Shown one piece after another: positions 12,701-52,766 of a stretch of DNA of 64,000 nucleotides (its first letter is position 1; the number at the start of each line of letters is the position of its first letter). The position numbers were made by a program, and so were the translations under genes. The stretch spans positions 15,624,001 to 15,688,000 of the forward strand of contig OU015567.1 of the NCBI GenBank assembly GCA_907165135.1. Reading direction: 5' to 3'. The notes beneath the pieces are model-generated. The model was given only the letters and a program-made list of their open reading frames with translations, searched no databases and was not told the origin of the DNA. The DNA comes from Oikopleura dioica (lineage: Eukaryota; Animalia; Chordata).

Positions 12701-15610
12701 ATTTAAAACCAAAAATATGGTGTTTTTAAAAATTTCCATTTTTCGAAGGAAAGAGCTGACGAGGGGGTCCTTAATAAATCTTATTTTTTATAGCATTTTT
12801 TAAAATTAAAGGTATCTCTTCGTTAACTCAAATAAAACCAGAAGAAACCCATTATATGATTCAATTTTTGTAAATAAAAAATAAGGGTATCACAACGTTT
12901 ACTCGAGAAAAAAACGATGATTTGGTTTTAAGACTGTGACTCCCTTAATTTTATTCTCAGAATAATTCGGGGGTGAAAATAGAATGAAATTTCGCAATTT
13001 TATTTCCCCTTCCTGAGAGTCAATTTCCCGGCCTCGAGATCCTCGCCGGGAAGAAGGTTCTTGTTGAAGCATTTCCGACACTGGTTTTTCGACAAATGAA
13101 GACGGTTCAGACGCGAACAGGGGAGTGTTGGAGGAAGTGACAATAGGGCCCGGGTGGCGCACGGAAATGTTTACTGTTCAGAGTTGACTTTTTATACAGT
13201 AAAAACTGCTTTGAGGTTAGATTTCAAATTAATTTTTCATCGATTATAATCTGAAATGTTAAAAATTTTCTTTACGGCTTGTCGGGATTTTGCGCATATT
13301 TGCTCAGAGATGCAAATAGAAAAACGACACCCCCTCGCACCATTTTTACAAGTGAGTTCTTCTTGAGACTAGGAATCGAGAATGGCGATGATCGGGACGG
13401 TCATAAATGATCGCTACAAAGTGATAGAAGAGATAAAGCCGCCTAGAGATGGGAAAATTTATCTGCTTGTTGGGGACTTGCAAGAAAGTAGGAGACTTTT
13501 TTTAGAGAATACCTTTTATTTTATGATTCAGAGGAGTCTTATTTGGACGACGAGAAAAAAACGCTGCAACAAAGGCCAGTTAAAAAAATGCTAAAGGGAA
13601 TTTTTCTTTACGGAGAAAAAGAGCGCGAAGAAGCAAAACTCGAAGTTGATCTTCTTAAACAACTTGGAACGGGTTCATAGACACCTTCTTTAACAAATTG
13701 AAAATTAAATATCAGACTTTTAAATTGAACCCTATTGAAGACCACCCAAATGTGATAAAACTCTACGACGATTTTGAATTCACGAGTTCTGATAATTTTC
13801 CGTATCACGCGTTGATTTTTGAATATATGGAGGACGGAAATTTGGCGGACTATTGCAAGAAAAAGCTCAATGGAGGTATTCAAATCCACTATTCAAAAAT
13901 ATTTATACTGTTTGTTACTCAGAAGAAGAAATCGAAGAAGAGGATCAATCAGAACCAAACGAATTTACAGAAAATGAAAAATTTGGACTGACCGTTTCCG
14001 CACAACTTGTTTGTGCTTTAGGTTGGTTAATAATGGAAAAATATCAGAACATATTCTTTTTAAGATCACATTCATGATAAAAATATCATTCACCGAGATG
14101 TCAAGCCTGAAAATGTTCTTTTGTCGGGAAAAACGGTTTGTAAGATCAATTGAACCGCGAAGTTGATTCATTTCTTAAGGCGAAGCTAGGCGACTTCAAT
14201 ATTTCTCGGGCAGCAGAGGGAACGCAGACAACAGGAGTTGCTGGAACATCGGAATATTTGCCACCAGAAGCAATTCAAAATCCTGACAGTGAGAAACTAT
14301 GCTTTCGAAGAGACATGTGGGGCCTTGGAATCATTTTTCAAATGCTTTGCACTTTCAGGACCGATTTTTGAAGATTTTTCTTGAATTTAAATTCGATACT
14401 TTGAAAAATCGGGGAAAGACACCCCTTCGCGGGCAAGAATTCTTTTGAGACAATGATGAACATCGTCAAAAATCGTCGAATGCCAGCTGAAGTTGGGTTT
14501 CCAAAAATAGAGAGTTTGATCAAGCAATGCCTTGTTCCTGAAATCAGCGAACGAGCAGAGAGCGCATCGGCGTTGATGAAACATCCAGCTCTTTACAGTT
14601 TGACTGAACAGCTCATTAATGGGATTTCGCCTTATTGTTTGGAATTTGAAAAAAATCGAGTCGAGACACTGGAGATCGTCGTGAAACATTTGAACAGAGA
14701 AATTGACTATGAGAAAAAAAAAAAAGCATGCCTTCAAGATAAACTCGAAAATCTGTGGAAATTTGGAATTGGGCATTACTTTGGTTTGGACTGCAGAAAA
14801 GTTCGAAGGGAACACTCAGAGACTGATGTCCGAAGCATTCTAAAAGCAATCAACAACGGCGGCGTGCGAAATATCAATTTGAAGGAATCGGATTAAATCG
14901 CATTTTTAAGTTTTTTGATTTTTGTTTCGACGCGATTTTCATCCAAAATAAAGTTTTGTTCCTGGAAAAATTTAGAAGTGTCGGAAGCTGGCTGGACAAT
15001 CCGACATCAATCGTGGAAAGAAAGAGACGGCGGCGACGGCTTCTGGAAAATTTGGATTTTTTTCAACGGTATCGATTTTTGAGTTTGAGATTTTTATTTT
15101 TTAGGAAAACGCGTCGACTTTCAAGCCGACGCGGACGATATTTACTGGAAAAATGGGAAGAGCAGAAACTCGGCGAAGAAGTTGACGCCGGAGCAAGACG
15201 GAATGGTCAGACTCAAAGGAGAAAACGACTGGTCGACAACTTATGTCCGCTGGAATATTTCACTCAAAAACTGATTCTAAGAACCTTTTTGATTCTGTAA
15301 ATAAAAATGATCATGAAATTGAAAAAAATTCTTCCATATTTTCTCTGAAGTCAACCCTTTCCTTTTGGTTCAGTTTCCATAACATCCGTCTCCACCGGTC
15401 CAATTCCTTTCGCATTTTCAATCGCAGGCGAATCTCTCTCTTCATCAGAAGAGCTACTGTCGCTTGAGCTACTGTTTGAAGAGCTGCTGAGTTTTGGAGG
15501 AGTTGAAAACTTCACCGAAGGTTTGATTGTTTCTGGAGATTTTCTGATCTCAGCCGAGGATGTATCGAGAATTGGGCTTAAGGAGTTACCCCTCGGTAAA
15601 GTCGAAGATG
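9776..15610 (-). CDS. Large multi-exon Ser/Glu-rich low-complexity gene (partial); hosts kinase paralog 1 in an intron
   Basis: Phase-compatible canonical chains: exon ~15610-15356 (SSSSNSSSSDSSSSDEERDSP..KGK) joins exon 13173.. (VNISVRHPGPIVTSSN). Exons 10912-10858, 10640-10553 and 9882-9776 join in frame (..APLSPS|ERKLRNISRSSS..AEKR|SRKSSLDNVNQ..VKP). A probable further exon lies near 11600-11850. Ends are not defined. Confidence 0.55.
10150..10410. repeat. GCTAA/GCTCA pentamer-rich element
   Basis: Dense agcttagc/gctaag/gctcag motifs in both orientations, related in motif to 23975, 33390 and 44270. Termini not resolved. Confidence 0.6.
12434..12770. mobile_element. 337-bp non-autonomous DNA transposon, TTAA target site, GG..CC termini (Kolobok-like)
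   Basis: TTAA|GGACCCCCCGTCAG ... CTGACGAGGGGGTCC|TTAA. An inverted, diverged copy lies at ~54778-55099. Confidence 0.75.
13382..15274 (+). CDS. Ser/Thr-type protein kinase (NEK-like layout) + short coiled coil + domain X; paralog K1, 9 exons
   Basis: Spliced product has MLK (beta3), LEVDLL (alphaC), HPNVIKL, HRDVKPEN, DFN, GTSEYLPPE, DMWGLG and HPF..SALMKHP. GA-AG introns at 13667-13740, 14359-14418 and 14885-14953; the other five introns are GT-AG. Ends YVRWNISLKN* at 15274. Confidence 0.9.
14359..14418 (+). other. Example GA-AG non-canonical intron with a 9-bp terminal stem
   Basis: TTC AG|gaCCGATTTTT...AAAAATCGGggaaag|A CAC CCC restores the kinase C-lobe motif FRHPF. No GT donor does so at this site. 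Confidence 0.85.
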
Positions 15611-18600
15611 CTTCTTTTTTGAAAGTTTTGAAAAAATACGAGTGAATACGAAAGAAAGTTCGCTTTGAACAAATTTGTGGGTACAAAAGCTGGTCTGATT
15701 ACATCAAAGAAAAAACATCTCCGCGCTGATGCTCCATACAATGATTTAATTAAGATAAGATTTAGAAGAGTTGGTTTAGAGGACGTACGTGAACACGAGT
15801 GCGGATTTGACGACAAACGCGCGGCGCGCAACGCAGCCCAGGCGGCCTTTTTTCGCTAAATTGATTCTACTTTTTTTGCAATTCGCTGTTTAGGCAATGC
15901 GCGTTTAGCAAAAATTTCGTAAGATATTGGCTCACAAAAAAAAAAAACTTTTCAAAAGGCATTTCTAAGGGAATCGATCCCCTTAATGATCATTTTTTGA
16001 AATCCGTTTTTGCTAATTTTTTATTCAATGACACCCTTATTTATCGAGTTTTATGTGTTAATGTACTCTTATTCTTGAAAGAGATTGCGACGAGAATCGA
16101 GAGTTTTCAAGCCGACTAATATCTCGAATTTCCGCGGCAATCTTTATCTAAAATCTGATTGGCCTACTGGCCAAATAAGGGAATCTGATTGGTCGAAAAC
16201 TATCTAAAAATTTTGGTCAAAATTGTTGGACGAAAATTGATGATTCTAGCTGCCTTCTCCTAAAAAGGCATATTTATGAAATAAATTTTTCAAAAAATTA
16301 AGGGTGTCATTAGAGAAACTCGAATCAATTCAGAAAATGAACACAATCTAAAATTATATTTTCATGAATAAATTAAACGTCAAAATATCTCATTTTGAAA
16401 AAATATTTTACGAGATACACCCCCATATTTAAACCTAACCCTTTAGATCATAAAATTGCGCAATATGTTCAATTCAATAACTTTGCTTGAATAAAACTGG
16501 TCTCCTCCGCCGGAAGGGCTCGATTGACATCAATCTCGTAAGGCTGTTTCTGCGTAATGAAACTGCTTTCAAACGGTCGGGGGCTAGACTCTTCGGGCAC
16601 TTGTCGAATTCGGGCATATTCGACATTGCTCGTTTCCGGTTCTTCCGCGTCTGAGATTTCCGTCTTGCGTCGTTTGAGGGAGCCGCCAAAAGCCGGAACT
16701 GGCGAAAATGAACGGCTGAAAGAAAACAGCGTTAAAATAATAGAAATTCCGGAGAATTAGACTTCCAGCCATCTGATTGGCCGAAATGCTGCGAAAAAGC
16801 GCCATCCATCGTCGATAAAAAATAAAGACAGTTAAAAAAATGACTGTAACGGATCTGTAACGGATTGTTTGATGAAATTCTTGAGGGAATTGTTTAATGA
16901 ATCAGTTCGCTCGAAATTTGTGTGTCGGAACGTGTCAGTCACGTGTCATTTTTCGTTCACCTGGGTGAATCGGATTCGCCTCCTTCGATATGCATTTATA
17001 CTTCAGAACGGGGTCCAGAGCCGGAAAAGCAAATCTTATCAACTGATGTTCCGCAAACATCATTTTAAGACGCTCTTAGGCAAAAGCGAATTTTATACTT
17101 TTGACAGTCGCCCGAAAAAAAAAATAACAAACTCAGGAGAGTTGAATTTATGGTGACTGAGCAAAATTAATAAAAATTTCATCTGAAGCTACTTTTGGGG
17201 GAGGTGTGTGGAACCGACAAAAAATTCGACAAATTTTGCATGGAAATTTTCAACCAATCAGAAGCCTGGATTCGGTAAACCAGTCAATCAGCAGCCGAGT
17301 AGCCGCCAACCCAAAATTTGTCGAAATTTTTTGTAAATTCAAGTCACCATCCCCTTTTAGGGGAAACCCTTTTTTCTGAAATTTTGGGTTGCCAAAGGGT
17401 TTGAAAAATCGAATGCCGTCATAGAATGAGGGCAAAGGGGAGCAAAAAATCTGACTCGGCAACCTGTGTTAAAAACCTGAGTCAGGGTCCGACAGATCTC
17501 AAGCCGCGTAGTATGAAAAGCTTTGCGGCTTTGTTTTATCAAAACCGCATTTCGGGTTTTCATTGGCGATCTGCCGGACCCTGACTCAGGATTTCTACAC
17601 AGGTTGCCGAGCCAAGATCATACAGTTCTTTCAGACCTTAGTCAGGTTTTCTCCAAAGAAATATAATTTGAATATTTTCTTTCTTATCTCTTTCACAAAT
17701 TATTCGTCAAAATACTCCGAAATCATCTGTCCCAAAAACCTTTAGGCCCTCGAATCGCTGAACCAAAGAGCGGAAAGAGCTGAATTGCCGGTGCTCACGG
17801 TATTTCAGAAAACTGCTCTCGAGATTTACATTTCGAATTTATGCGCCTCACGTTGGTGGTTTTTGTTTGGGCAACTTAACTAATCCTTGTTTCGAATTGT
17901 TGAATAAGAGCGCAGATCCTTTGCCAGATGATGCAGTAGCTGAACCGAACGTGTGCAGAGCCACGTTTTTGGAAAAAATACCTTGATCGGAGCATTATTT
18001 CTACCGCGCGTTTCCGGAATAAACGAATTTAAACGTTTTGGAGCGGAAATTGACGTTTGAAGAATCAATAAATCGCTCAAAAAAGGATAAATGAAAGGAA
18101 TAGAAAATATTTTAAAATGATACCTAATAAAAAGAAACAACTTTTCATTGGCTGATAAAAACAAAAAAGCGCCACCTATCGACGACAAAGATGATTCTTG
18201 CCATTTTTGGTTTGAAATTCAAGTTTTAAACCTTTCTTCTCGGCTTGGCAACCTGTAAAGAAAACCTGAGTCAGGGTCCTGAAACAGGTAAATAAAGCTG
18301 TTTGAGAACCCTGACTCTGGTTTTGTACTCAGGTCGCCAAACCCAGAAAAAAAGCTTTTAAAACTAGAATTTCAAGCTAAATACGAAAAAAAAATCATTT
18401 TTGCCGTCGATAGATGGCGCTTTTTTGTTTACATGAGCCAATAGAGATGAGCTCTTTTATGATGAGGTTTCTTTTAAACTATTTTATCGTCTGCCAAAAT
18501 CAAAGTGATTCCGGCAATTTGGAAACCGCAAGGACTTGTAGGGTGCAATTTGGTTTAACTTGGGCTGGGTTAGACAAGTCCGCGAAATTTACGTCATTTT

Positions 18601-20314
18601 TCGCGAAATGCCAGACCCTCCTTTTTGAGATGAGGAAAAGTCTTAGACGAGTGGGGGCTACTCTTTACGAGACGAGTCATTTTAAGTGAATTTCGGAAAA
18701 AAAACGCGGAAACGTGGGTTTTGTTTTGCCGCGCTAAAAATAGTAATGGAGCACTAAATGTAAGTTTGTGGCGAAATACGAAGCGGTGAATAATCATTTT
18801 TTTCGAAATCAAATCTGAAAATTGGATAAATTAAGCAAGCTTTTATATAAATACGAACTTAATGGGGTTTCACGAAAAGCTCTTAGAACGTCTTATTTGG
18901 CGCTTAATTGGTAATAATGATGATTGAATTTAACTTTTTCTCTGAAGAGATTTAATTGCCAGGTTCCTCGGCAACCTGTGTAGAAACCTGAGTCAGGGTC
19001 TAAAAGTGACTGAAAAGAGAATTATTAGTAAAAAGGGCACAAACCAAAAAAAAAGAAGTGCATTTTTGGAAGACCAATAAGCTTGCTGCATTTGACCTAA
19101 CGGCCAATGAAAACCCAGATCCATAAAATCACTCACTTTTCTTGGTTTTGCCCGTAAAAAGCCGCCTCTTCATCAGAAATCTTTCAGATCCTGACTCAGG
19201 TTTTTACACAGGTTGCCAAACCCTGTTTTATTGGGTCCAACAACCCTTGAACGAAACCTGAGTCAGGGCTACCACAGATAAAAATATTCGGTGAATATTT
19301 TACTGTTGGACCCTGACTCAGGTTTTCCACACGAATTTTTTTCTCCCCATGTTTTTTGAGAAGGAAGGATTATTTTTCGAAAAGAATTTGAAGGGTCTAA
19401 TTATCTTCTAAAAAGAGCTTCGTTGAACACGGCTTAAATTGAAAGCTGGCAGCAATTTTGTGGCGGAAATGGGTTCTGTTTTTCGCCTCCGCCTTATTCA
19501 GCCCGAGCAGCGTCCGGAATCTACCAAAGAACAAGCTCAGAGTGTTCTAATCGTGAACAGCTCTTTTTATTCATTTTTTCGAAATTCCGCGAAAATTAAC
19601 AAAAATTTTTCAAAAAACTTTTTTTCGTTATCTTACCTGGTGATAGTAGTCAATTCGCTGATTGGCTCGTCATTTTCTCCAGCACTAGAATTTAAAAATT
19701 AAATACGGTCACGTGGAAGGAGCCTTGAAAGCTTGGAAAACGGAAATTCAGAAAAAGAGAGCTTGAATTCAACTAAGCCAGTAAGTCAGAATCGAATTAG
19801 TGGAAGGATCCATGATCAGAGCAGCTCAAGCGATTATGCGCTCCAGCCACTTTTTAGAGAGTCATCAAGCTGGACACGTACTCAGGTGTTCGAAAAATTG
19901 GGCGCAGGATTTTGCCCGTTGAATTAGCCGCGAGCGGCTTTGATAAAAAAAAATTGTCCGTTTGAAATTAAATTATTTGATGAAAAAATGTCATTTTGAA
20001 TCAATTTGATTGTTTTTTTAAAGAAAAATCAGCCAATAAGAAATGGTAAACATCAGTCAAAATTTTTGACTCGAAATATTTTGCAATGATAGCCGCTCGC
20101 GGCTGTTTTGTCTGAAAACGAAAATTTCCATATTTTTTCATAATTTTGAAAAAACCTATTGGCCAATCAAAATCACGGAAAAATTCAAAATCTGAGTTTT
20201 GGCGGGTTTTGAATTTCTTTTGAAAAAATTCTTACTTTTCTGGTTTCGGGGAAAATTGTCTTTCCTGATTTCTTGGTTCTTCTTGATTTTCTTCTTTTTC
20301 TTAAAATTTTTTGT

Positions 20315-20828
20315 TCAAAAGTTCGAATCGATGTAATTTTTGAACGCGGAAAAAGCGCGGACGCGGGTGTTCTTCTTCGAAAGAACCGCGATTGCTTGAT
20401 CGGCGGTTGGAATTCCCGTAGCGGAAAAAGCTGAGGTAACTTACCAACGAGGAGACGTGGTTTGAACGCGACATCGTGCGACACTTTGTCGCTCGGTTCC
20501 GCATCAGAAGCCGCTTCTTCTTCGCCGAAGGAAGGTGCAAACATGTGACCATCTTCGTCAGAAACTACTTCTCCGGGAAAAGCGGCGTCGATCGATTTTC
20601 GCTGAAGATCTTTTTTCACAATTTCAAATTTAATCTTACCTGAGCGCGATCAGAAGATTCGGAATATTTGGAAGAACTAGAAGAGCTCGAAGAAGCATTT
20701 GAGGAAGGAGAAGAAGATCTCGACCGCTGGATTTCCGATCGAAATGCGTCTGGAACATTCCTTTCGCCTTCTTCATTCGCGACGTTATCCGGCTCAGCCG
20801 ACTCTTCCGGATGATCTGGCTCCACGTC
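20315..20828 (-). CDS. Three spliced exons (20828-20640, 20601-20445, 20394-20315) of an acidic, Ser-rich protein
   Basis: Strong gtaag donors and in-frame joins: DVEPDHPEE..SSSSSSSKYSESSDRAQ|RKSIDAAFPG..KPRLLV|AIAVLSKKNTRVRAFSAFKNYIDSNF*. Relation to the gene at 9776-15610 is unknown. Confidence 0.55.
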
Positions 20829-22190
20829 CTTTGAAACTATTTACGAGTTACTTGATCCGCTCTGTTTCAAATCGTAGGCATTTTTGAGGATTATTTTAGG
20901 TGAATAGATTTATGCATTAGATGGCGCTGTCCAAAAAGAGCGCTAAAATAAATCGCTCTGATTGGCTGAATCATAAAATAGTCAAAATCTTGTCTAAGCC
21001 AATAAAAAAGCGGTATTTTTATAGATAACGCTGTTTTATGGAGGACGCCGAAGTACTCGCTTCTAATTGGTTAGAATAAATAAAGTGAAAAATTATCTTA
21101 GCCAATCAAAAGAGGTATATTATGTACCGTAGATTGCGATTTTTAAATATGGCGCTATTTATTGAAGAACGGCAAAATACGCCTTTTTGATTGGTTTAAA
21201 AAGTCAAATAAAATAAAATCTCGTAGCCAATCAAAAAGAAGTATTCTTTTCGGCGCTCTTTCTTAAATAGCGCCATCTAGCGTAAAATTCATTATTTCCC
21301 TTGAAAATAACAAATTTATCAAATAACATTTTCCTGGCTCAGCGATTACGTGTTCGTTCTCCCTTGCTTGGCCGAAATCGTGTTGCTAAAAAGATAGATC
21401 AGGTTCCATGCTTCTTAGAGATCGGTGGTTCCGAGGAGCATGGACAAAGCAATTTTGCAACAGATAAAGCCGTAAACAGCTGGAGAAGACATTCCTCGAC
21501 AAGATAGGCCAAAGCCGGATGACTACCCAGAATCCGATCAAACTGCAGAAAATCGCAAAAATAACAATTCAAAAAAAAAAACAAAACAGCTGCGGCAAAT
21601 TTAAATGTCCAATTTGGACTTAGAATTTGGCAGTAAAAAATGATCAAAAAAGCGAAAAAAAGCCGTTCGCGGCTTTCAAGTTAAAAAGCAGCAAGCGGCT
21701 TTTTAGTCGAATGTAATAAAAAAGCCGCTTGCGGCTTTTCAATAGAATTTATTTTTATAATAAGGGCTCTTTCTGTTGATTTTTTGATAAAAAAAGCCGA
21801 CTTCGGCTTTTCGCATTTTCTATTTTGAATAAGATTATAAGTTTTTTAATAAAAAACCGCAAGCGGCTTTCTGCGTCTATTGTTTTGAACTGAGCTCGGC
21901 AACGTGACTGTAGAAAACCTGACTCAGGTTCTGAAAGGCAAAAATTAAAAGCCGCGTAGCGGCTTTCTTGAAAACGAAGCCGCAAAGCGGCTTCGCCAGT
22001 ATTTAAATGAACATTAAAGTGATTGTATTGCGAAGCCGCTGTGCGGCTTCGTTTTTAAAAAGCCGCTACGCGGCTTTTCATTTTAGCTCTTTAGAACCTT
22101 AGTCAGGTTTTCTACACAAGTTGCCGAAGCCAGGTTTTGAAAGCCGCAAGCGGCTCTTATTTTCAAATCTATTTTAGAACAAATACTCAC

Positions 22191-25485: not shown

Positions 25486-25749
25486 TTAAAATTCATTGAT
25501 CATTATACATGTTTTCGAACATTTTTTGTCGAAACTAGACATGTACATATTGTATTTAAATATGAAATTTAAATTTTCATGATTTCATTTTAAATTATCT
25601 CATAAACTTCATTTTTTCCCAAAGTTACAGATTTAATTATCTTTTTTACAATTGGAAAGATACATATTAAAAAATTTTATATCATTTTTCTTTTGCTTTA
25701 AATCGCGTTAAAAGTAGAGCCGCTTGCAATTTTGAGAGACGCGCCGAAA

Positions 25750-27195
25750 ATGTCTGAAAAATCCTCAGATGTCAGCGAAAGTATTTTTTCGGACGAAACA
25801 ATCGTATCTTTTTCATCTTTAGTTGGTAAGAAGATTTATACCGATTGAAAATTTTTGAAACTTCAGAAAAATTACGATCGGAAATGAGAACTGGGTCCGA
25901 TAAAGTCATGGGGGAAGTACAAATGCTGAAGATCACCCTTTCCGATGCGCTTATAGAAAATACTGGTTTTAAAAAACGGATTGCTGAGCTTGAGAATACC
26001 GTTGAAAACCTTGGACTTAAAGTGAACCAGCTAGAAAAATCCCTTGAGGAGAAAATATTAGAAAATGAAATGCAAAAAGCCAATTTTAACACTGTCAACC
26101 AAGTTCAGGCGAATCCGAAGCCAGGGTTTGAAATCTGACAAGCTCACGAGCACGTGAGCACGTAAGTGAGCTCGATAAGCATGCTCACGCGTGCTCATGC
26201 TCACAAAATTTTGGACCCCTCGTGCTCACGCGTGCTCATGCTCACCGATTATAGAGAACAGTCGTGCTCAAGCGAGCTCATGCTCATGAATCTCTGGAAG
26301 GGCAAATTTCGTGCTCATGAGCACGTGAGCACGTGCTCATAGCTCACATTTAGACGTGCTCACAGTCGTAACGACTCAAATTGACAGGTTCAATAAGCGG
26401 TTATAACTAATAAGTCAAACTTGAGGCTGCGCGGGTGGAATTTTTGGGCCGTTCCTTGATTTTTAATTTAAGGAGGTCAATATGGAAAAATTTCAATTTC
26501 CAGATTTCAAACCCTGTCCGAAGCCTGCCAATATTCAGTCGAATTTCGTCTTGCATTTAAAAGAGCTTGAGATTGCTCAAAAATACGGGAATGTTTTATT
26601 ATCTACGTAACAAAGACTTATCATTCTCGATTCTTAAAGCTAAAAAAGTTGTTTTGGTCATTTTACTGACGATGATAAAAGTGAGAAGCACGGTGGAAAA
26701 CAATGGGCTGATAAAACGGCTTTTGAGCTTATGATGAAAGCTTTTCAAAGTGGATTGAAAGAATTTACCCTAAAGGTTGATATTATATATTATTTAAAGA
26801 TCAAAGAAAACCATCATTATTTACAGGTTGCAGCGGATAACAAGAATTTAACTGTTGGAAACACAACACTCAATTATGATAATTGGAAAGCAAAACAATC
26901 TGACGGGACAAGAAAATACATAAAGCGTCTCTCTATTACTCGTGAAGGTCACTGTTTATATGATTACTATTTTATGTTTTATACATGTAACACAATAGAG
27001 TAATGAATTCAAGGGCGAAAACTGAGATTCAAAGCAAGATGCCAGGCTATGAATTCTTTTTCCGGTCTCGAAATGAAAAGATATGATTGGAAAGAAACAG
27101 ATTCTGAAGGTGTTCACGAGCAAATTATTCTTTTCACGGACTGGGAAGACGGAACCAAATGGTATGCAAGATACCATGTCACTTTTATTGAATAA
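25750..27195 (+). CDS. Coiled coil + divergent domain X protein (paralog D0, no kinase), interrupted by a hAT MITE
   Basis: ATG 25750, GT-AG intron, then coiled-coil exon (KKRIAELENTVENLGLKVNQLEK). Downstream: FGHF..ELMMKAFQSGLKEFTLK|VAADNKNL..ITREG|RKLRFKARCQ..WYARYHVTFIE*. This aligns to the family's FGHF..VLKGMAVGLTTFNLK|..YKG|KRVDFKAD..YYVRWNITVLK*, with both introns at the same position and phase. Confidence 0.7.
26122..26516. mobile_element. 395-bp hAT-type MITE in a coding exon
   Basis: Perfect 16-bp TIR CAGGGTTTGAAATCTG / CAGATTTCAAACCCTG and perfect 8-bp TSD TCCGAAGC (26114-26121, 26517-26524). Internal GTGCTCA/TGAGCAC repeats. Confidence 0.95.
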
Positions 27196-28921: not shown

Positions 28922-29859
28922 ATGCAAAACGCAGACCAACAATCAATCATTTCTGAGAGCTCTCTAGGAAGTAGCTATTACAAAAATAAGGGCCAGGAGT
29001 CTGGCGAAAACAGCACGAAAATCGACAATTCAATGCTGAACTCGATTTTGGAGAGAATCGAAAATCTGGAAAAGGATAATTCAACTTTCAGAAGGCTTGC
29101 ATTCGATCTGAAAGCTTTGGAGGAAGAAAAAAACGAGTTGAAGGCGAAAAATGAAGAGCTCGAAAAAAAAGTCGCCGAGCTTGAAACATTCAAAGAGAAC
29201 GCGATTCTAGCGAGCAAGGAGCATGATTTTCAAATCGAAGAGGTTCAAAAAACAACTGGAACTTTTTCAGAAGAACTGAAGAAGGAAATTGCAAACCTAA
29301 AACAACTGAAGGAAAAAGCTGAAATCGAAATTATTCGCGATGTTTTCGAATTTCCTGCGAAAAATGGATTCGGCCATTTCTACGAGCTTGATTCTTACAA
29401 CGTCCGACCCCACCACGACGAAGCCGCTGTACGAAGAGTGCTCAAAGGAATGGCGGCGGGACTGACGAACTTCAATTTAAAGGAATTGGATAAAATCGCA
29501 ATTTATTTTTTTTGTTTCTTGTTTCGACGCAATTTTCATCCAAAATAAAGTTTCATTACGGCGAAAATTTAGAAGTGACGGAAGGCGGCTGGAGAATCCG
29601 ACATCAAATGTTCTCCAAAAGCTACGACGGCGACGGCTTCTACAAACTGTGGCTAACATACAACGGTATTGATTGTTGAACTTTAGATTATTATTTTTTA
29701 GGAAAACGCGTCGACTTTCAAGCCGACGCGGACGATATTGACAGTGTAGATGGGACGAGCTACAACTCGGCGAAGAAATTGACGCCGGATTCAAGCGGAA
29801 TGGTCAAAGTCAAAGGAAATTGTGCTTTTGTCCGCTGGAATATTACAATTTTGAAATAA
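28922..29859 (+). CDS. Coiled coil + domain X protein (paralog A, no kinase), 3 exons
   Basis: Long coiled-coil exon ending TNFNLK, GA-AG intron 29483-29550, exon FHYGENLEVTEGGW..WLTYNG, GT-AG intron, then KRVDFQADAD..FVRWNITILK*. Confidence 0.85.
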
Positions 29860-30199: not shown

Positions 30200-31163
30200 A
30201 TGCAAAACGCTGACCAAATGTCTGAGAGCTCGATTGGAAGTAGCAACTACAAAAACAAGGGCAAGGATTCTGGCGAGAACAACGCAAAGATCGACAATTC
30301 AATGCTGAACTCGATTTTGAAGAGACTTGAACAGCTTGAAAATGACAATGCGACTTTCCGAAGCTTGGCATTTGATGTGAAAACTTTGGAGAAAGAGAAA
30401 AATGAATTGAAGGCGAAAAATGAACGGCTGGAAAAAAGAGTCGTAGAACTTGAATCATTCAAAGAAACCGCGATTTTAGCGAGCAAGGAGCGCGATTTTC
30501 AAATCAAAGAGGTTCAGAAAACAACTGGAGCTTTTTCAAAAGAACTGAAGGAGGAAATTTCAAACCTAAAACAACTGAAGGAACAAGCTGAAAAGGGCAT
30601 TGACGAATTGAAAAAATCTGGTGCTGAAATCGAAGTTTTTCGCGATGTTTTTGAATTTCCAGCGAAAAATGGATTCGGCCATTTCTACGGCAGAGACCAT
30701 GTTTTAGACCGAACTCACCACTCTGAAGAAGCAGTCCGACGAGTGCTGAAAGGAATGGCTGTGGGACTAACGACTTTCAATTTAAAGGAATTGGACAAAA
30801 TCGCATTTTTTGATTTTGATTTTTGTTTCCACGCGATTTTCATCCAAAATAAAGTTTTTTGTTGGCGAAGATTTAGAAGTGACGGAAATTGGCTTGATAA
30901 TGCGACTTCAATCGCAGAGCAATTTCAACGGCGGCGACGGCTTCTGGAAGATGTGGATCACTTACAAAGGTATTGATTTTTGAAATTCAGATTTTTATTT
31001 TTTAGGAAAACGCGTCGACTTTAAGGCCGACGCGGACAATATTGACTATCATGATGGGAAGAGCTACAACTCGGCGAAGAAGTTGACGCCAGATTCAAGC
31101 GGGATGGTCAAATTCAAAGGAGAAAGATATTATGTCCGCTGGAATATTACCGTTTTGAAATAA
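30200..31163 (+). CDS. Coiled coil + domain X protein (paralog B, tandem duplicate of A), 3 exons
   Basis: Colinear with A. GA-AG intron 30788-30854. Ends YYVRWNITVLK*. About 90 bp of 3' flank are shared with A. Confidence 0.85.
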
Positions 31164-40573: not shown

Positions 40574-42433
40574 ATGGAAGGAACTGTGATAAACGATCGG
40601 TTTAAAGCGGTAAGAGAGCTGAAGGCGCCTAGAGATGGGAAAATCTACTGGCTCGTTGAGGACCAGCAAAAAGGTAAGAGCGGAAAAGGAAGACAATTGC
40701 TGAAATATTTTGATAGGAAATGAGCTGAAAATGCTAAAAGGTATCGGCCTCTTTGACGAAAAAATGGAGCAAGAAGCAAAGCTGGAAGTCGATCTTCTTC
40801 AACGACTAGGTAACGTTTTCCAACTTGGTTTCTAAATTCCCAGAATTGGTAAGTTATAAACCCGAAACTCAGATCATCCGAATGTCGTAAAACTTCATGA
40901 CAACTTCGCTTTCTCTTCTCACAACAATCTGCCCTACCATGGCTTGATTCTCGAATATCTTCCTGGCGGTGATTTGGGCCAATTTATTGAACAAAAACTT
41001 GAGAACGGTAAGGAGAAATCGCATTTTGTATTTTTATGATTTCAGAGGGAGGTGAAAACGAAGAAGAATGGGTGGAAAAGGACGCTCTTGGCATTTGTGC
41101 TCAAATTGTTCTTGCAATGAGTAGGTTTAAATGACTCTGATAAAGCGACTTACTGATTTAAAGACTATTTGCATGGAGAAAATATAATTCACCGAGACAT
41201 CAAGCCCGAAAACATACTTCTTTCTGGCGACAAGAAAGAGGTAAATTTCAAATAATAACTTCTTGAAAAGATTATCAACAGATCAAAATTGCTGATTTCA
41301 ACGTTTCCCGACTTACCGACGGAACTATGAATACTGGCGTCGCCGGGTCGATGGAATATCTACCTCCAGAGAGTCTTCAAGCACATGGAAATGAAAATGT
41401 TACTTTTGGCCATGATGTTTGGGCGATGGGAATCGTTTTTCAAATGCTCTGCACTTTCAGGAATAGTTTTAAAAGTTTCGTTATTTAAAATTCTTGAAAA
41501 GACTTGGGCTCTAAAACTTAATAAAGACACCCTTTTGCAACAGGAAATCTCTTTCAAATAATCAGCAACATCGCTCAGAATGTAAGAAGACCTGCAGAAG
41601 TAGTCTTCCCGGCGATGGAGAGTCTGATACAACAATGCCTGCAAGTCGACCTCGGGGAAAGAGCAGCAAATGCAGCAGCTTTGATGAATCACCGCTCGAT
41701 CGTCAGTTTGATAAAACAGCTTCAAAATCGAATTCAACCGAAAGACTTGGTTTTTGGGAAAAATCGGGTCGAAACGACGGAAGTTATCAACGAGCATTTG
41801 AACAAAGAGAATCTGAAAATGAATAAAGAAAATGAAAATCTGAAGAAAAGAAACAGTTACCTCGAGAGACAATCAAAAGAAATCTTCCAAAATATGTTTT
41901 CCATCGGAGATGACCAGTGTGAAAATCTTTGGAAAATTGGTTTCGGATTTTATACTGGCCTTGACTCTATCATTGTCCGAGAAAGTCACAAGGAGAATGA
42001 CATTCGACGAGTCCTTCGAGCAATGGCAGCCGGCTTTACGGAGTTTAATTTGAAGGAATTGGATAAAATCGCAGTTTTAGTTTTTTGATTTTTGTTTCGA
42101 CGCGATTTTCATCCGAAATAAAGTTTGTTTGCGACAAAAATTTAGAAGTGACGGAAGCTGAATGGACAATTCGACATCAAACGTGGAAAGAAAATTACGA
42201 CGGCGACGGCTGCTGGAAACTGTGGCTAAGTTTCAAAGGTATTGATTGTTGAATTTGAGATTTTTATTGTTTTAGGAAAACGCGTCGACTTTCAAGCCGA
42301 CGCGGACGATATTGACTGGGATGATGGGAAGAGCTTCAACTCGGCGAAAAAGTTGTCGCCGGATTCACAAGGAATCGTCAAACTCAAAGGAGCATATTCT
42401 TTTGTCCGCTGGAATATTAGAATCCTGAAATGA
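40574..42433 (+). CDS. Kinase + coiled coil + domain X; paralog K2, 9 exons
   Basis: MEGTVINDRFK..RDGKIY..KMLKGI..LEVDLL..HPNVVKL..HRDIKPEN..DFN..GSMEYLPPE..DVWAMG. Same intron positions as K1. GA-AG introns at 41461-41526 and 42056-42123. Ends FVRWNIRILK*. Confidence 0.9.
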
Positions 42434-43684: not shown

Positions 43685-44269
43685 CAATAAGGGTCTATTA
43701 TTGAAAAATTGAATAGAAAAAGAAGGATTGTATAATTTTGTTCACGAATTAAATTTAATTATTCTATTAAATTAACCCAAAATGATTACGGGGCCAAAAT
43801 TTCGGTCCCGAAAAATTTAAGGAATTCGACAAAAAAATAACTGTATTTTGACGAACCAGAAATGTTCAATACTCGAGTGCTCAGATTTAGCAAAAGCTAC
43901 CATTCTAGCGCCCTGTTTTCTTTTCTTGCGTAAGTTGACTTTGCGCTAAGAGGCGAATTCGTTCGGCTTTTGGATTTATTATTCAGAGTCGTTCTCGCCC
44001 GTGCCAATTACTGCTTTACATGGCAGCTGCTGAAGGCAAGGTGCCGCATAAGAAGACTCCCAGACCGGATCAGCGCCGCTTTGCCCAAACGCAGTGAGAA
44101 ATTATCCTGAGCCGCGAATTTACACAAAATACTCAGCCAGACGCAAATCTCAGCTGGAAGAAGAAAATCGCATTTTCAAACAGAAAATTGTAACTGATTC
44201 ATTTTCGAAAAGAAAAATAAAGTGAAGTTTGCAAAAAATCAATCGTAAAAGAATCCACATTTTTAGCTA

Positions 44270-44880
44270 AGCTAACAGGAATTTTGAGAAGAGGCTTAGC
44301 TTAGCTTAGCTCAGCTAAACTGGTTCAGGGAAAAAATAGCTCAGTTGAGCTCAGGTTTTTGAGCTGATCCATACTTAACTGAAATCAGCTCAAAAAGCGA
44401 AGCTCAGCAAACTGAGCTCAACTCACGTAAAATGAGCTGAGCAGGAATTTTCATCTACTCAACCCAATTTATTTGAGTATGAGGCAAGCTCAGCTCAGCT
44501 CAAGGATTTTTAAATAAAGTAAGCTCAGCTGAGTTGGTAAAAATCAGCTCAATACGCTCAGCTCAGCAAACTGAGCTGAACTCAAATCATGAGCTGAGCA
44601 CGGAATTTCCTCTGCTTAGCTCAAATGCTTGAGTATGAGGCCAGCTCAGCTCTGATCATCATTTGAAAATAGAATTAGCTCAGCTGAGGTGACCTGATTG
44701 AGCTGACCAGCACATTTGAAAAAATCAGCTCAATAGGCTCAGCTCAGCTAGCTTTGCTTTAAAAAAGCTCAGCTCAGCTGGCTCAGACGACGTTGAAATT
44801 GAACTGAGCCGGCCAATTTCTAGACCTCGCTCAGCTCAACTATTTGTGGGCTAAGCAACTCTAGCTCAGCTCAGCTCAAT
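44270..44880. repeat. (AGCTC)n-rich element with ~155-bp internal tandem units
   Basis: The unit AAAATCAGCTCAA..GCTCAGCAAACTGAGCT..ATGAGCTGAGCA.GGAATTT..TTGAGTATGAGGC.AGCTCAGCT recurs at ~44381 and ~44540, and partly at ~44720. Confidence 0.7.
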
Positions 44881-47800
44881 TTTTATCTCCAAAAATTTGC
44901 AACTTTTTGCCTATCCCGTAATTCTCCTGAAAAAAAAACGCTCATCAGAAAAAAATGGTTCATTTGAAAACACGCTTAGCGCCGCAACATTTTCCGGGGT
45001 TATACTTTTTCTTACGAATTTAAAAGTGGCAGCGGAAAACTTCTATCAAGTGGCAACTTTGTATACATTTAGCGATTTCGGTTTCCGCCGCGGTTTGAAA
45101 GTTATTTCTAACTTCCGGAAAATTAATTAGAATTTCGCTTTTGAACTAGATTACAACTCGGCTACTTACTTATCTGACATGCAAGTTTGCTATTTGCATA
45201 ACGCGGCTGGCAATTAGAAAAATGTTTCCACGATATTTTTGCAATTAATTTTCGCGTTTATAAACGCAAATTATAATTACACTGAGCAATTTTCAAGAAC
45301 TTTTGATTTTAACAGAAAAGGAAAAGAGAGCTTTCTGATTGGTCGGTTTCCAAAAGAAAAGCGCCACCTGCTGGTTTTTTTCAACTCTTTCTGAGCTCAG
45401 CGAGCTCGGCAACCTGTGTAGAAATCCTGAGTCAGGTTTTGAAGACCGGCTTTTTATTTGAGCTCTTAAAAACCTGACTCAGGTTTTCTAGACAGATTGC
45501 CGAGCGCACGAAATTTGGTGAGAATAGTTAAAAATCACCAGCAGGTGGCGCTTTTCTTTTGAAAATCTACCAATCAGAAAGCTTTCTTTTTCTTTTCTGA
45601 AACGTAAAGAGATCTTTTTTGAACAAAAAATGCACCTTTTGAATATTCCCAGGCTTCTAGCGTTTCCGCAACGGAACTTTTCAAAAGTTCATGTTACAAA
45701 CCCCCGTTTTTTTATGTCTATCAGAAGTAACCCTGCTGAATTCGTAAATAAACATATCTTTTCTTTTCGAATTTTAACATGGCTGTAGAATCCGTCGCCG
45801 GTTGGTTTTCTCTCACGATTTACTCAGCTTGCATAACTCGCGCTCCAAGCCGCTTTCAACAAGCTTCAACGTTTTCTTCATTTTTTCTTCGAGAAAGTGC
45901 TTCGCATTCTTTTTCATAAATATGCCAAAAACAACCAAACAGAACATAATACAACAATTTTCAAGAATTTTCATTTTTCGGTTTTTAACAAACGCTATTT
46001 TCATTTTTCACGTTTTAGAGTCCAAAAATTAAGGGTATCTCTGATTGAAAATTTATTTTCAAGAGAAACCCTTAAATTTCGAAAATATCGCTTATTGTGA
46101 CGATGACCTTATTTTAGCAGTAAGGGCATTCAAATAAAAAACGTTATTTTTGATAAAATGCTCAAAAATATCGTTTATCGTTGGGATACCCTTATTTTAA
46201 AGAACGTTTCGGGGAATCTGTTAAAATAAGGGTATCCTAAAAATAAATAAATATAGTTGCTTCTAGCCTTTTTTGTGTCGACAAAATTTTAGCCAATAAG
46301 AAGCCTGCATTCGGCCAACCAGCCAATCAGCAGCTTTTTTTAATTATATCAAGATCTCTTTTTTTTGAAACAAAAAAATACTTGTTCAATAAGATAAAAA
46401 TTGTTTTCCAGAAAAAAGTTCAAATTTAATTCAACCCCAAATACTTTTTGGGAGCGCGACAGCTCATAAAAGCATGTTCTAAAAACAAAATCGGATAATG
46501 ATTGACCAGCCAAGTCACCTCTCGCAGGACTTTGCGGTTTCTGATTGAGCTCCCCGCAGCTGCACTTTTAGGCGCTCAAAACACCAAAAATCAGCCCTGA
46601 TTTCTTCCAAAGCTTCTACCGCGTTTTTCCTGTAACTTCTCAAAAACGATGTCAAAGGGTTGAAGAATGACTGTTTTGTGAAAAATAAACGGAAGAGCAA
46701 CAGCATTCTTTCGCAGGGAGTGCGTAACTTCCGCACCAAATTTGTCTTACAAACGGATCAATCCGGCTTTACGAGATAATCCACAGCCGGGAAAATACTT
46801 TTTCGAAAATTTTTTATCAGCAGTGAGATAATGACCTTTCAGTTTTTCACTGAGAATATTGAGTTTTTTTTTTATACAAAAGATACAATCAAAATCTAAA
46901 TTTTTTATTGAATAAAATTTAACAATAAATTTATTCAGCCAATAATGAAAAGACTAACTCCTAATTACCAAGATGATTTTCTTATTGTGACTACGCTTGT
47001 CTCATTTAATAGTAATTTCTTGTTTGGCAAGATAGTAAAACAGCTCAAACGCTTTATAAGGCCCTGATTTTCAGGTTTAAAGAACACCTGCAACGATAGC
47101 CATCGATTAATATCTTTTATCGACCTTATAGGAGCTCTATCTACCTGAGCAGGTTTTTTTAACGAAGCCGGCTTTAATTTTTAACCGTAAAAAAACTTGA
47201 TTTATTTTCTTTGAGTTCAATAAGCGGAGTTCAGACCCTAATCTTTCCCGGTCTTTTTTTTTTTGGACCAAAACCGGTTGTGTCATTTGTTTTAGTTCTG
47301 GCTCGATTAGCGCTGGAACGAACGAGCTAGAACGGATGATTCTTTTTTCGGTAGTCGACAGCCAGCGCGCACGATTGCGACTGCTTCCGAGGTTTTGATG
47401 CACGGGACGAACGTTTTCCGTTTTCTTCCAAACACCAGGCAGAATTATCAATACCAGAATTTTGGTCAAATTTATTTTTCACGTTTCTGGCCGATAAAGG
47501 GTACCCAGAAAGCAGAAAATACAAACAAAGAATTGTTTTTTCAGTGGTTTCATAAGAAAAAACCGCTGGAAGAATATCAGATATGGATTTTTTTTTCTAT
47601 TTTCGTGGAAGAAATGATTTTTTCTTGGCCCCCGATTACGAGAGTAGATATTTTGTCACATTTGAGATTGCGGTTATTACTTATGCGCATCTTATGCAAA
47701 ATTCATTTTGTGGACGATAAGGGATTTTTCTCTATTTTAACGGTTTTTGGTCCAAATTATCATTGTGACACCCTTATTTTCCTGAATAACAATTTTGTGA

Positions 47801-50671
47801 AAGCTCTATCTAGTTAATTTTTCGGCTCCATTTCAATTTTCCATCCCAAAATGTTCTGCGAAAATTATCAGTTTTTCCCAAATCTCCATTTTGACCAAAA
47901 TTTTGGGGTGGCGTCATGAACCGACAAAAACACGTCGAAAAATTTTGCGTGGGCGGCTACTCGGCGGCTGATTGGCCGTTGAGCCAATTCCAGGCTTCTG
48001 ATTGGTCGAAAATTTCTACGCAAAATTTGGTCGAAATCTTTTTGTCAGTTCCTGACACGAAATTTTTGGGCTCGAAAAATAAAAATTATAATATAAAATA
48101 TATTTTGAGCGGAAAGATAAGAGTGTCGCTATCTTAATTTTTGGACAAAATGCATAAAAAAATCTTTTATCGTCATGGTCGCCCCCTAAAGAGGGTAGTT
48201 ATTTTGTCACATTTCTCATTGCGGTTATGCGCATCTTATGCAAAATACATTGTGAGGGAGGAGCGATTTTTCACTCGGTTTGGGGGTTCTCGGAACGCGA
48301 GCCAACTGGTGCATATTACATCAGCACGCGACAACTCTCCACAGCCACTCACACAAAATCGAATCCAACTGCCGATGCTGCAGCACCTGCACAGCGTTTT
48401 TATTCAAACCCCTTTTTCGACTTTTTTCCTTTTTTTTTCTCTTTTTCTAAACGTGCGCTCTATCAAGTACGCGACTTATTAAAGCTTACAGTTATTTTTC
48501 AAGCTCACTCCAATTTTTAAATCACCTCACTGTCTGCCACAGTTTTTTTCATAGGGCAATTTTTATACAGAAAATGAAATAAAAAGAGCATTTTTTGGGG
48601 AGGTGTCTGGAACCGACAAAAAATTTCGACAAATTTCGCATGAGAATTTTCAACCAATCAGAAGCCCGGATTCGGCTCACCGGACAATCAGCAGCCGAGT
48701 AGCCGCCCAAGCAAAATTTGTCGAATTTTTTTGTCGGCTCCAAACGCGAACCCCTTATTTTTGGCAAAAATGGATTTTGGCCAATCAGAAGCCTTATTTG
48801 GGATTTTTGACCAATAGGGTTTATTAATAGGGCATTAATAGGGTTAATAAGAGCCCGAATTTTCCCGGAAACTGGTAAAAAAACCTGAGTCAGGGTCGAG
48901 AAAGTGCCTGACTCAGGATTTCTACACAGGTTGTTGAGCCGATATCACCTGAAATCTTAAGGGTATACAAACGAAATTGGAAAAAAAATTCATTTTTGCC
49001 AAAAAATTTGGACGAAAAACGCTCTTTGTTGAACAAAAAATCAGTTGCGAAAGTTGTGGAGTTGTGGAGATGGACTTACGTTTACAATGGAATGCAGTCG
49101 GGAAATCTCAAACTTGGCTCGTTTTTCTAAAGAATGCGAATTAACATCGGCGGAGCCACAATCTTGGCTAAAGTGACACAAGAATAAACCACGTCGCTTT
49201 CTCACGCAAAATAGAAAAAAAAGAAGAAAGCAACGAAAAAAGTTCCATTTTCCATGTTTTCCCTTTTTTGAAGAACCGAGGTATTTTTCCGCTGACGGAA
49301 TTACGGCGAACAACAAATTAAGGGGTTAGTCACTTGAAGTCACTTTGAAGTTTTTTGTTTTTTGAACAAATTAGCGAATTAGTAACGCGACGAAAAGAGC
49401 GGAGAATGTGCGAAAAGCCATTTATTCGTGGACAACTGGAATTTTCTTATACAAGTTTTTCGCGTCTTACTTTTTGTTCAAAAAAAAAGAAAAACTAACA
49501 AAATAGGCCATAAATGGCGCTGTCAACGAAAAATCGCCACCTGTTATTGAAAAGATCTTTGATTGGTCAAAAATTCAATTATTGCTTTTGGGTTGAATAA
49601 AGCCAACTTATAGTCTATAATTTATCTTTAAGTTATAGATAGATTTAAATTTGATTGGCCGAGAAAATGGAGCCATAGATGGCGTTGTTCAAAGAAACAT
49701 GCCATTTAGAATGTATTGGAGAATCCTATTTATCAAAAATTGATGTTCAAGTAACAGTTAAATTATTGCTCCTATGAGATTATATACTTGATTATTGATT
49801 GGCATTTTAATTACAATTGTATTTTTGTACCTCTAGAACTCATGCTCAATCCTTCCAAGTTCTCTCTTTATCTTTTTCCGTCGTGTCGTTTTTGGTTTTC
49901 TAAAACTATCACATGGCGAAAAAAAGGCTCGTTTTTTAGCACCGAGCGGCAATACTTCATAGTTTTCGGATTAGAGCTGTCCCAACAGCTCAAACTTGTC
50001 AATTCATCTTGCGAAAATTAAGGACCGCTTTTTGCGACTTTGATGATTGATTGAACCGAAGCTGAATTTTTATTGTAAAAAAAAAATGAAAAAAATTTTG
50101 GCCGAAATTTTGATTTTTACCCATTTTTGAAAATTTTTTGAAAATTTTTTTAAATTCTTTTTTTGAAAAATTTTGGATCGAACAGCTGGTTTATTTATTT
50201 CTATTGAAAACATCTGAAAAAGAAGCTCCTTTTGGTGTGAAAAAGAATTGAGCGCGAGTGTCGTTTTCTAAGTTTGGTTTGACAATTGTGGCTCTGTTTT
50301 GTCGATAAAACCGAGGTTCTAAAAGCGCCCGTTCACGGCAACGTTTTAAAATCGCCAAGTGAAAACATGTTCAACAAAATATAAAATACGATGCGAGTTA
50401 CGAGTGTTTTCAGCGACGTAAGACAAGCAACGTAAAATTGAGAAACTGATTCAAGCTGTTTTTCATTGCGACTTATAAATTGACGAAAATCGGTAAGAAT
50501 TTAAAAGTTTTTTTTTTAATTTAAAATTTGAACTAAGGAAATCAATTTTTTAAAAGATTTTCCAAAAAAGCGTTGAATTGTTGAGTGACTGAAAAGTTAA
50601 AACAAAATTTATTATAAAGAGAGGATAAATTTACGTCTCGTTTATTTAATCAATAATTTAAATGTACAGAA

Positions 50672-52766
50672 TTATTGTCGAATTGTAATATTCCAGCGAA
50701 CATACCAATGACTTCCTTTGAGTTTTACCATTCCTTGTGAATCCGGCGTCAATTTCTTCGCCGAGTTGTAGCTCTTCCCATCAATATGGCCAATATCGTC
50801 CGCATCGGCTTGAAAGTCGACGCGTTTTCCTAAAAAAATAAAAATCTCAAATTCAACAATCAATACCGTTGAAAAGAATCCACATTTTCCAGAAGCCGTC
50901 GCCGCCGTAGCTTCTTCTCTCCGATTGATGACGGATTGTCCATCCAGCTTCCGTCACTTCTAAATTTTCGCCGTACCAAAACTTTATTTTGGATGAAAAT
51001 CGCGTCGAAACAAAAATCAAAGAACAAAAAATGCGATTTTATCCAATTCCTTCAAATTGAAAGTCGAGTAGCCGGCTGCCATTGTTCGGAGCACCTTTCG
51101 CACTGCATCTTCGTTGTGGTTCAATCGTAGGTCGACACCAAAGAAATGTCCAAATCCATTAATCGCAGGATTTTCCCCAAAAGAGCGCACAATTTCCGAT
51201 CGATCAGCAGTTGTCTGTTTTCGCTGAGCACTGTTTTTAGCTTTCTTCAATTCGTTCAAATCGCTGTTGAGTTTTTGATTCATTCTTCGCACTTCGTTCA
51301 GATCATTGTTCAGCGTGTTGACTTGTCGTCTCAATTGCGCGTTTTCTTTCCTCATTTTTTCAATGCTACTTTTCGCCAAATCACGTTCGCGAGAAAGCTT
51401 ATCGACTTGATTCTTCAATTGAATATTTTCTTGATTGAGCAATTCGTTGATTTTCATTGTTGTATCCATTTTAGAAAGTCCAAAAGTCAGATCAGCCGGC
51501 AAAACTCGATTCTTCAACTGCTCGATCAAACTGACCAGGGCCGGGTGAGTCATCAAAGCAGCAGCACTTTCCGCTCTTTCGCTGATTTCAACAACAAGAC
51601 ATCTTCTGATCAAAGACTCCATCGCCGGGAAAATCACTTCAGCAGGTCTCCTGGCATTGTTGACAATATTCGTCATTGTCTGAAACGCGTTTCCAGCCGT
51701 AAAGGGATGTCTTTATCAAATTTAACAGTTATTAACACTGGTTGATTTCCAAGGAAAATTGTTAAATCGTTCCTGAAAGTACAGAGCATTTGAAAAACGA
51801 CTCCAACCGCCCAAATATCATGGCAGAAAGAGAGGCCCAGTGCTCCCTTGATTTTTGATCGTCTCGGGAGCCAAGTAGTCCATTGATCCAGCGACGCCAG
51901 TGTGAATCGTTACTTCTGCAGAGCGGGAGATGTTGAAGTCCGCAATTTTCACCTAAATCATGAAATCAACATTCCTATCGCTCTTTGGTTCGATACCTGT
52001 TGGAAATCAGCGGACATGAGGATGTTCTCGGGCTTGATGTCTCGACGGATGATGTTCTTCCCGTGAATGTAGTCTTATCAAAGATATGAGGATGGTTTTG
52101 ATACAAACGAACTTACTCAGAGCTAGAACAAGCTGGGCTGAGATTCGTAAAGCGTCATTCTGAGCCCACGGAAGTTCGTTTTCACCGCCTTCTAAAATAA
52201 TAACGATATTATTATTTCAAAGATGCAGCTTTGACTTACGATTGTTGAGCATGTTTTCGAAAAACTGAGCCAAATCGCCTCCAGGAAGATATTCCAGGAT
52301 CAGACCAGAGTATCGAAGACCGTTCGGGCCAGTAAACATGAAGTTGTCAAGCAGTTTTACGACGTACTCATGGTCTTTTGATGATTTCACCAGCTGGTTC
52401 CTGTAAATGATTATCTGTACAAATGAGCTTCCTGTACAAATTAATATGAAGCTGAAATCATTCCTAATTGCTGAAGAAGATTCACTTCCAAATTGGCTGC
52501 ATGTTCTTCTTTCCGCCCGAAAAGCCCGATTCCTTTCAGCATCTTCAGCTCGTTACCTGGAAACAACAGTCAACATAGCCAAGCATGCAGTTCAAACACT
52601 GTTTCTCAAACAGAACTGGAGTCGCAACGCTATTACGTAACACCGTACCGGGCAATGGGTACTTACCATTTTCTTGGTCCTGGACGACAAAATAAATCTT
52701 TCCCTCTCTAGCTTCCTTTAGCTCTCGTAACACTCGATATCTCCCATTCAAAACTTGTCCGATCAT
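50672..52766 (-). CDS. Kinase + long coiled coil + domain X; paralog K3, 9 exons
   Basis: MIGQVLNGRYR..REGKIY..KMLKGI..LEVNLL..DHEYVVKL..RRDIKPEN..DFN..GSMDYLAPE..DIWAVG. GA-AG introns at 52463-52375, 51772-51711 and 51049-50982. Ends WYVRWNITIRQ*. Confidence 0.9.

Follow-up and report, generated by a model that had tools for sequence, protein, structure and literature searches.

The stretch of DNA analysed here (the window, 64,000 nucleotides [nt]; C5:15624001-15688000, on chr2 of Oikopleura dioica OKI2018_I69) holds six members of a gene family built on a C-terminal domain, here called X. We read this family, with a probability of about 0.5, as a lineage-specific set of intracellular recognition proteins in which X heads are carried on coiled stalks, found so far only in Oikopleura. 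The X module is found in three arrangements: following a divergent Ser/Thr kinase (K1, K2, K3, and most genes of the surrounding cluster), without an enzyme (A, B, and D0, together with their subfamilies), and, in a single dispersed gene, following a RING and TRAF/Sina-like zinc fingers. More tentatively, the family could form, in a chordate whose genome is pared down, a repertoire of ~40 intracellular variable receptors, with TRAF-like heads shaped by selection and cassette exchange, wired to kinases, and accompanied by kinase-less and RING partners; such a repertoire would be mostly invisible in public annotation because X is split by a GA..AG intron.

Six window genes and the exon structure of X

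The G+C content of the window is 38%, its open reading frames (ORFs) are all short and interrupted by introns of 35-70 nt, and Rfam and tRNA scans of its whole length gave zero matches. Motif and tblastn scans located five close copies of X, in K1, A, B, K2, and K3, whose exon c starts lie at 15105, 29702, 31006, and 42276 on the plus strand and at 50829 on the minus strand; each of two nucleotide probes (20-26 nt) matches exactly these five copies, with a chance expectation of 0-0.1. These genes and the sixth, more distant member, D0, are laid out as follows (window positions).

13382..15274 (+): K1, kinase, short stalk, and X; 9 exons, 493 aa; spliced model open from ATG to stop
13382-13487, 13532-13672, 13741-13875, 13923-14021, 14065-14135 (+): K1 exons 1-5, from the splice-junction listing
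14180-14358, 14419-14884, 14954-15068, 15105-15274 (+): K1 exons 6-9, from the splice-junction listing
14729..15274 (+): K1 domain X, with its part of exon a at 14729-14884, exon b at 14954-15068, and exon c at 15105-15274, from per-exon HMM matches and the sequence
14885-14953 and 15069-15104 (+): introns 1 and 2 of K1 domain X
25750..27195, approximate (+): D0, kinase-less, coiled coil and distant X homologue; X-like exons 26647-26775, 26827-26947, 27014-27195
28922..29859 (+): A, kinase-less coiled coil and X, 277 aa; exons 28922-29482, 29551-29665, 29702-29859; open model
30200..31163 (+): B, kinase-less coiled coil and X, 286 aa; exons 30200-30787, 30855-30969, 31006-31163; open model
40574..42433 (+): K2, kinase, stalk, and X, about 487 aa, 9 exons; open model
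41909-42055, 42124-42238, 42276-42433 (+): K2 domain X, part of exon a, exon b, and exon c
50672..52766 (-): K3, kinase, long stalk, and X; gene start at 52766, X intact
51050-51193, 50867-50981, 50672-50829 (-): K3 domain X, part of exon a, exon b, and exon c
14885-14953, 29483-29550, 30788-30854, 42056-42123 (+) and 50982-51049 (-): the five copies of intron 1 of X, all GA..AG

An earlier note on this DNA, made from its letters alone, had called A, B, and D0 kinase-less; kinase-like DNA in the window is confined to K1, K2, and K3, and the window scan found none near the other three genes. That note had also placed X at the C-terminus, always, after a coiled-coil stalk of some 25 to over 100 aa. 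The placement holds and the stalk does vary in length, but its measured extent, between PAEV in the kinase and GFGHF in X, is 83-165 aa. In the AlphaFold model described below the stalk is helical, weak Pfam matches mark it as coiled-coil-like, and the coiled coils of A and K3 bear a weak likeness to each other (31% identity over 49 aa). Inspection of family N-termini revealed no signal peptide or membrane segment, and all members appear to be cytosolic.

X is roughly 125 aa long and has a three-exon layout common to all five close window copies. Exon a carries the GFGHF motif and a helix and has its 3' end at FNLK; intron 1, of phase 0 and 67-71 nt, runs GA..AG; exon b terminates within a Gly codon; intron 2, of phase 1 and 34-37 nt, runs GT..AG; and exon c ends with VRWNI, a few further residues, and the stop codon. 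This splice model is supported by the presence of properly spliced X in the database records CBY14410.1, CBY11723.1, and CAG5110099.1 and in the transcript-derived protein P0009. Introns of the GA..AG type are frequent in O. dioica (PMC7072748). Treating intron 1 as coding sequence was considered and rejected, as there is no frame-preserving GT..AG alternative and the 21-23 aa that it would encode are missing from the spliced records.

The identity of intron 1 among 19 paralogs is 87%, above that of the flanking exons; its ends form an inverted repeat of 12-14 bp (GGATAAAATCGC with GCGATTTTCATCC), which is paired in the minimum-energy fold of 5/5 window copies, with z scores of merely -0.1 to -1.9; and its translation is retained where ORFs of other Oikopleura-like sources read through it. 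The intron could derive from a transposon, or the repeat could serve as a stem uniting the odd splice sites. In a dispersed, divergent X copy at C4:3.548 Mb (L019:6174-6749), exons a and b form a single exon, intron 1 being absent and the phase-1 intron 2 kept, which suggests a gain or loss of intron 1 during the history of the family. K1 has two GA..AG introns (14359-14418 and 14885-14953); the first of these (60 nt) is a phase 2 intron in the kinase, between CTF and RHPF, with a counterpart in K2 at 41461-41526 (66 nt), and a copy at C5:13.568 Mb is without an intron between CTF and RHPF.

Predicted fold of X and comparison with MATH/TRAF domains

Searches and folding of X were performed with single exons, one natural read-through ORF (L001:2860-3384, -), and database proteins, whereas joined exon translations, made from coordinates, were used for alignment, hhalign, and the ratio of nonsynonymous to synonymous differences (pN/pS). 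No Pfam family was found for X with single exons, the read-through ORF, or spliced database proteins (single exons gave only weak coiled-coil matches), and PDB sequences searched with the X family profile gave no match, so the description of X as an unrecognised domain stands at the sequence level. The ESM Atlas returned no feature match for X and, by structure, only generic beta-sandwiches. An exhaustive phmmer search against 1.84 billion representatives returned 25 proteins, ten of which were looked up: the named ones are all from O. dioica and the others are unnamed environmental ORFs. To the extent of these ten, the family is lineage-specific, as had been proposed. Several environmental ORFs among the X relatives read through intron 1.

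AlphaFold2 modelling of P0021 (CBY11723.1) with a 24-row family alignment gave a predicted local distance difference test score (pLDDT) of 83.9 and a predicted template modelling score (pTM) of 0.79, with pLDDT about 90 over X; the model consists of a stalk helix, one helix, and then eight to nine strands. The model of P0009, which belongs to another subfamily, has the same eight strands (pLDDT, 91.3; pTM, 0.84). X is thus confidently predicted, from these models, to consist of one helix and an 8-stranded beta-sandwich. Foldseek searches with the X models gave no match at E below 1e-3. The best full-domain structural matches of the two models are MATH/TRAF-like domains (USP7 and SPOP), with weak scores; for P0009, the SPOP MATH domain dominates the list, at a probability of 0.99-1.0, a TMq of 0.45-0.54, and an E value of about 1e-2. 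On the strength of the models we call X MATH/TRAF-C-like in shape and position, and we consider the odds that it is homologous to MATH/TRAF-C to be roughly even. Ordinary MATH genes are also present in the O. dioica genome. Two other assignments were tried and rejected: an Nrdp1-type C-terminal domain, as no Nrdp1 structure is among the listed structural matches, and a lectin or carbohydrate-binding module (CBM), as the CBM56 match spans just 74-77 residues.

The arrangement resembles that of TRAF proteins (RING, TRAF zinc fingers, coiled-coil TRAF-N, and MATH/TRAF-C) in that a coiled coil directly precedes a C-terminal 8-stranded beta-sandwich, as predicted for X, in that one X paralog carries a RING and two zinc fingers upstream, and in that both X models find their best full-length structural matches among MATH/TRAF-like domains. 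The analogy with the TRAF/MATH layout drawn in the earlier note is therefore apt. X differs from TRAF proteins in lacking sequence or profile similarity to MATH, with structure scores that are weak; it has an extra N-terminal helix and GFGHF motif, and most X members bear a kinase or nothing in place of the RING.

Family size, forms, and intactness

Whole-genome searches with exon c and exon b gave 25 and 29 matches, respectively, and combined per-exon profiles, run on the genome segments retrieved, identified at least 36 X-bearing places, D0-type copies not counted. At least 22 X genes lie in a 310-kb cluster (C5:15.55-15.857 Mb), about 10 copies are dispersed on C1, C2, C4, and elsewhere on C5, and the total family comprises 40 or more genes genome-wide. 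Hence, of the "local six-gene family" described before, the six genes remain, as five close copies and the distant D0, but their family, with 36 or more places across the genome, is not confined to this locus.

Five of the cluster genes lack a kinase: A and B, a gene at 15.5917 Mb, and two genes paired at 15.813-15.815 Mb. All five have one conserved N-terminus in common, with their own start codon, and form a conserved subfamily. The earlier note had raised the question of other fusion partners of X, and one was found: the copy at C1:15.19 Mb (P0029) has a RING of the C3HC4 type, two TRAF/Sina-like zinc fingers, a coiled coil, and X, in that order. Its Cys/His pattern is clear (fingers of the form C-x2-6-C-x11-H-x2-3-C), and its Pfam matches (Sina_RING, zf-C3HC4_3, and TRAFD1-XIAF1_ZnF) are all below the cut-offs. 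This form is represented by one paralog only and is absent from the six window genes.

D0 is a genuine, though distant, member of the X family, within a subfamily of its own, because of shared intron positions and phases, its paralogs, and a profile-profile match. Against the X profile, exon a of D0 aligns in the correct register and attains 16.4 bits, a value that 0/1000 shuffles reach, while exon c is marginal and exon b gives no score. The introns of D0 lie at the same two positions and in the same phases as those of X, its intron 1 being GT..AG. The D0-type subfamily has at least seven copies, D0 and at least six paralogs elsewhere, most of the latter in a tandem array at C4:5.589-5.598 Mb. 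A D0-type profile built from five sequences (D0 and four paralogs) aligned with the X profile end to end in hhalign (probability, 93-95%; E, 7e-8 to 3e-7; 121-126 columns).

The kinase part of family members from the genome or databases scores 56-99 bits against Pfam Pkinase (PF00069; cut-off, 31.7). Solved kinases match it at E values of 1e-20 to 1e-8, the closest being PDK1, DRAK/DAPK, NEK1, Aurora, and PLK, and no clear orthologue was found among them. K1 and K2 retain the beta3 Lys, the alphaC Glu, HRD..N, and the Asp of DFG. Between the kinases of K1 and K2, pS is 0.78 and pN is 0.27, and the dN/dS ratio for the coiled coils of A and B is 0.24; these comparisons show purifying selection on both the kinase and the coiled coil. 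The kinase of K3 has two lesions, a +1 frameshift that separates its APE and DxW motifs, near 51835-51845 (-), and RRD for HRD in the catalytic loop, at about 52040 (-), and K3 could be a kinase gene that is losing its kinase (a pseudogene) or an assembly error.

Much of the array might instead be decaying or unexpressed DNA, consisting of pseudogenes that gene conversion from a few functional copies keeps alike, an explanation that we consider quite improbable. The two lesions of K3 would fit it, as would the frame of D0, which is interrupted at 26114-26524 between the coiled-coil exon and exon a, the truncated or split cluster copies at C5:15788237, 15814092-15815232, and 15821877-15823030, and the absence of proper models from public annotation. 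However, the models of K1, K2, A, and B are open throughout, purifying selection acts on the kinase and coiled coil, 19 cluster copies have intact X and intact splice sites, and GA..AG introns, a type common in this species (PMC7072748), explain the annotation gaps. These introns are also why X is missing from several public gene models. The public model P0001 (chr2.g8393; L001:2857-3960, -) merges two adjacent genes of the kinase-less kind and leaves out exons b and c, and the OKI2018_I69 model for P0029 (PAR.g12759; L046:782-1600, +) stops before X; word-indexed protein searches returned only mis-modelled local proteins.

Sequence evolution and a possible recognition role

Mean nucleotide identity among the 19 intact cluster copies was calculated for each part of X and its 3' flank.

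Exon a: 64% identity
Intron 1: 87% identity
Exon b: 78% identity
Intron 2: 89% identity
Exon c: 81% identity
3' flank: 46% identity

In the model, the hypervariable residues of X are located in the loops b1-b2, b3-b4, b5-b6, and b7-b8. When codons were partitioned by the model's secondary structure, pN/pS was 1.66 in these alternate loops (bootstrap confidence interval [CI], 1.19-2.49), 0.43 in the strands, and 0.81 in the other loops; pN in the variable loops exceeds pS and is several-fold greater than intron divergence. These figures indicate that the four X loops, which differ from copy to copy throughout, are under diversifying selection while the scaffold and both introns are almost constant, and the loop value is as expected of a ligand-binding surface, which is what X had been proposed to provide. 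In the pair K1 and K2, pS is 0.31 in X, compared with 0.78 in the kinase, and this low value therefore fits an X cassette that has been homogenised or is younger than the rest of the gene.

The same data can be read in another way, with X as a structural, oligomerisation, or localisation domain of lineage-specific kinases that have an ordinary role (cell cycle, cilia, or gametogenesis) and with the loop variability arising from relaxed constraint and gene conversion. The homogenised cassette (pS 0.31 against 0.78) is consistent with this, and the nearest solved kinases are ordinary cellular kinases. Relaxed constraint alone, however, gives a ratio of at most 1, whereas loop pN exceeds pS and surpasses intron divergence several-fold; the scaffold and strands of X are strongly conserved; and the occurrence of X without a kinase, or with a RING, speaks for a modular recognition head and against an accessory to the kinase. 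We regard this explanation as unlikely.

In the recognition reading that we prefer, X would be a head shown on an oligomerising stalk, with the four variable loops at one end of the sandwich. Binding of a multivalent or polymeric target would gather the kinase domains and switch signalling on, as in TRAF and TRIM clustering; kinase-less forms might recognise targets of the same kinds but not signal, or might form bridges to further partners, and they and the RING form would act as partners or competitors of the kinase forms. Such a system might serve in defence.

Several results weigh against this reading. Neither spliced X proteins nor single exons match MATH (Pfam PF00917 and PF21355) at E up to 1, and when the X alignment was compared in hhalign with a MATH sequence from O. 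dioica, the probability was 0.04. All copies of the kinase have DFN instead of DFG and a degenerate glycine loop that retains a single Gly; because of these two features its activity is uncertain, and it may be a pseudokinase. The variable loops were assigned to one end of the domain by strand alternation, post hoc after the variability had been seen, and not from three-dimensional coordinates, and gene conversion among copies can distort pN/pS. Finally, some copies may be dead, given the frameshift in K3 and the interrupted frame of D0.

The target need not be a pathogen. It is also possible, if improbable, that internal conflict drives the family, with the same architecture directed at other targets in sperm-egg interaction, meiotic drive, or the recognition of transposon or endogenous-virus proteins. 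Reproductive and genomic conflicts likewise yield gene families that are clustered, diversify fast, and exchange cassettes, mobile elements abound in the genome, and one paralog lies on a contig whose gene names bear the label PAR; nothing in the analysis separates this explanation from pathogen sensing.

Several known systems share parts of this design. Expanded families of MATH-BTB adapters have reportedly been described in nematodes (by Thomas, in Genome Research, 2006). Grasses have expanded MATH-BTB adapter families as well (PMC4091423). Like the X family, the nematode and grass families show a large, clustered, lineage-specific expansion and adaptive change concentrated in the binding region (putative in X), and their recognition domain is of the MATH type, which X resembles in predicted shape. 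They differ in that the effector of the X family is a kinase or is absent, rather than BTB-Cul3, and in that the variable positions of X would be loops at one end (from strand alternation, not three-dimensional structure) and not a central groove. TRIM5alpha, fish finTRIM, and other RING-B-box-coiled coil-PRY/SPRY proteins are also cytosolic, with a coiled-coil stalk bearing a C-terminal beta-sandwich, a few hypervariable loops under positive selection, and tandem gene expansion, and the clustering of TRIM proteins on a polymeric target is the model borrowed above for signalling by the X family. Unlike them, X family proteins have no B-box or SPRY Pfam match, a head of about 125 aa compared with about 200 aa, and a kinase as the enzyme. 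Plant receptor-like kinases, together with their kinase-less decoys or receptor-like proteins, are similar in that a variable recognition module, sometimes joined to a kinase and sometimes not, occurs in tandem arrays; however, they are membrane proteins with extracellular heads, whereas members of the X family, by inspection of their N-termini, have neither signal peptide nor membrane segment and carry the head on the C-terminal side of the kinase.

New here are the MATH/TRAF-like top matches in two models, the RING/zinc-finger paralog, the place of D0 as a distant homologue with its own subfamily, the frameshift in K3, and an explanation of why X is missing from public annotation. If the recognition reading is true, the family would represent a new animal route to diversified intracellular recognition, in which a kinase is fused to a TRAF-like head, distinct from TRIM, NLR, and MATH-BTB, and it would fill part of the gap in knowledge on how appendicularians sense threats. 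The family also poses an annotation problem, as non-canonical introns have removed the defining domain of a family of at least 40 genes from several public models, and with its constant scaffold, constant introns, and variable loops it offers a tractable case of cassette exchange combined with diversifying selection. Elsewhere in the window, an unrelated ORF at 4728-5222 (+) has an S-100/ICaBP EF-hand match at the Pfam cut-off (22.3 bits, compared with 22).

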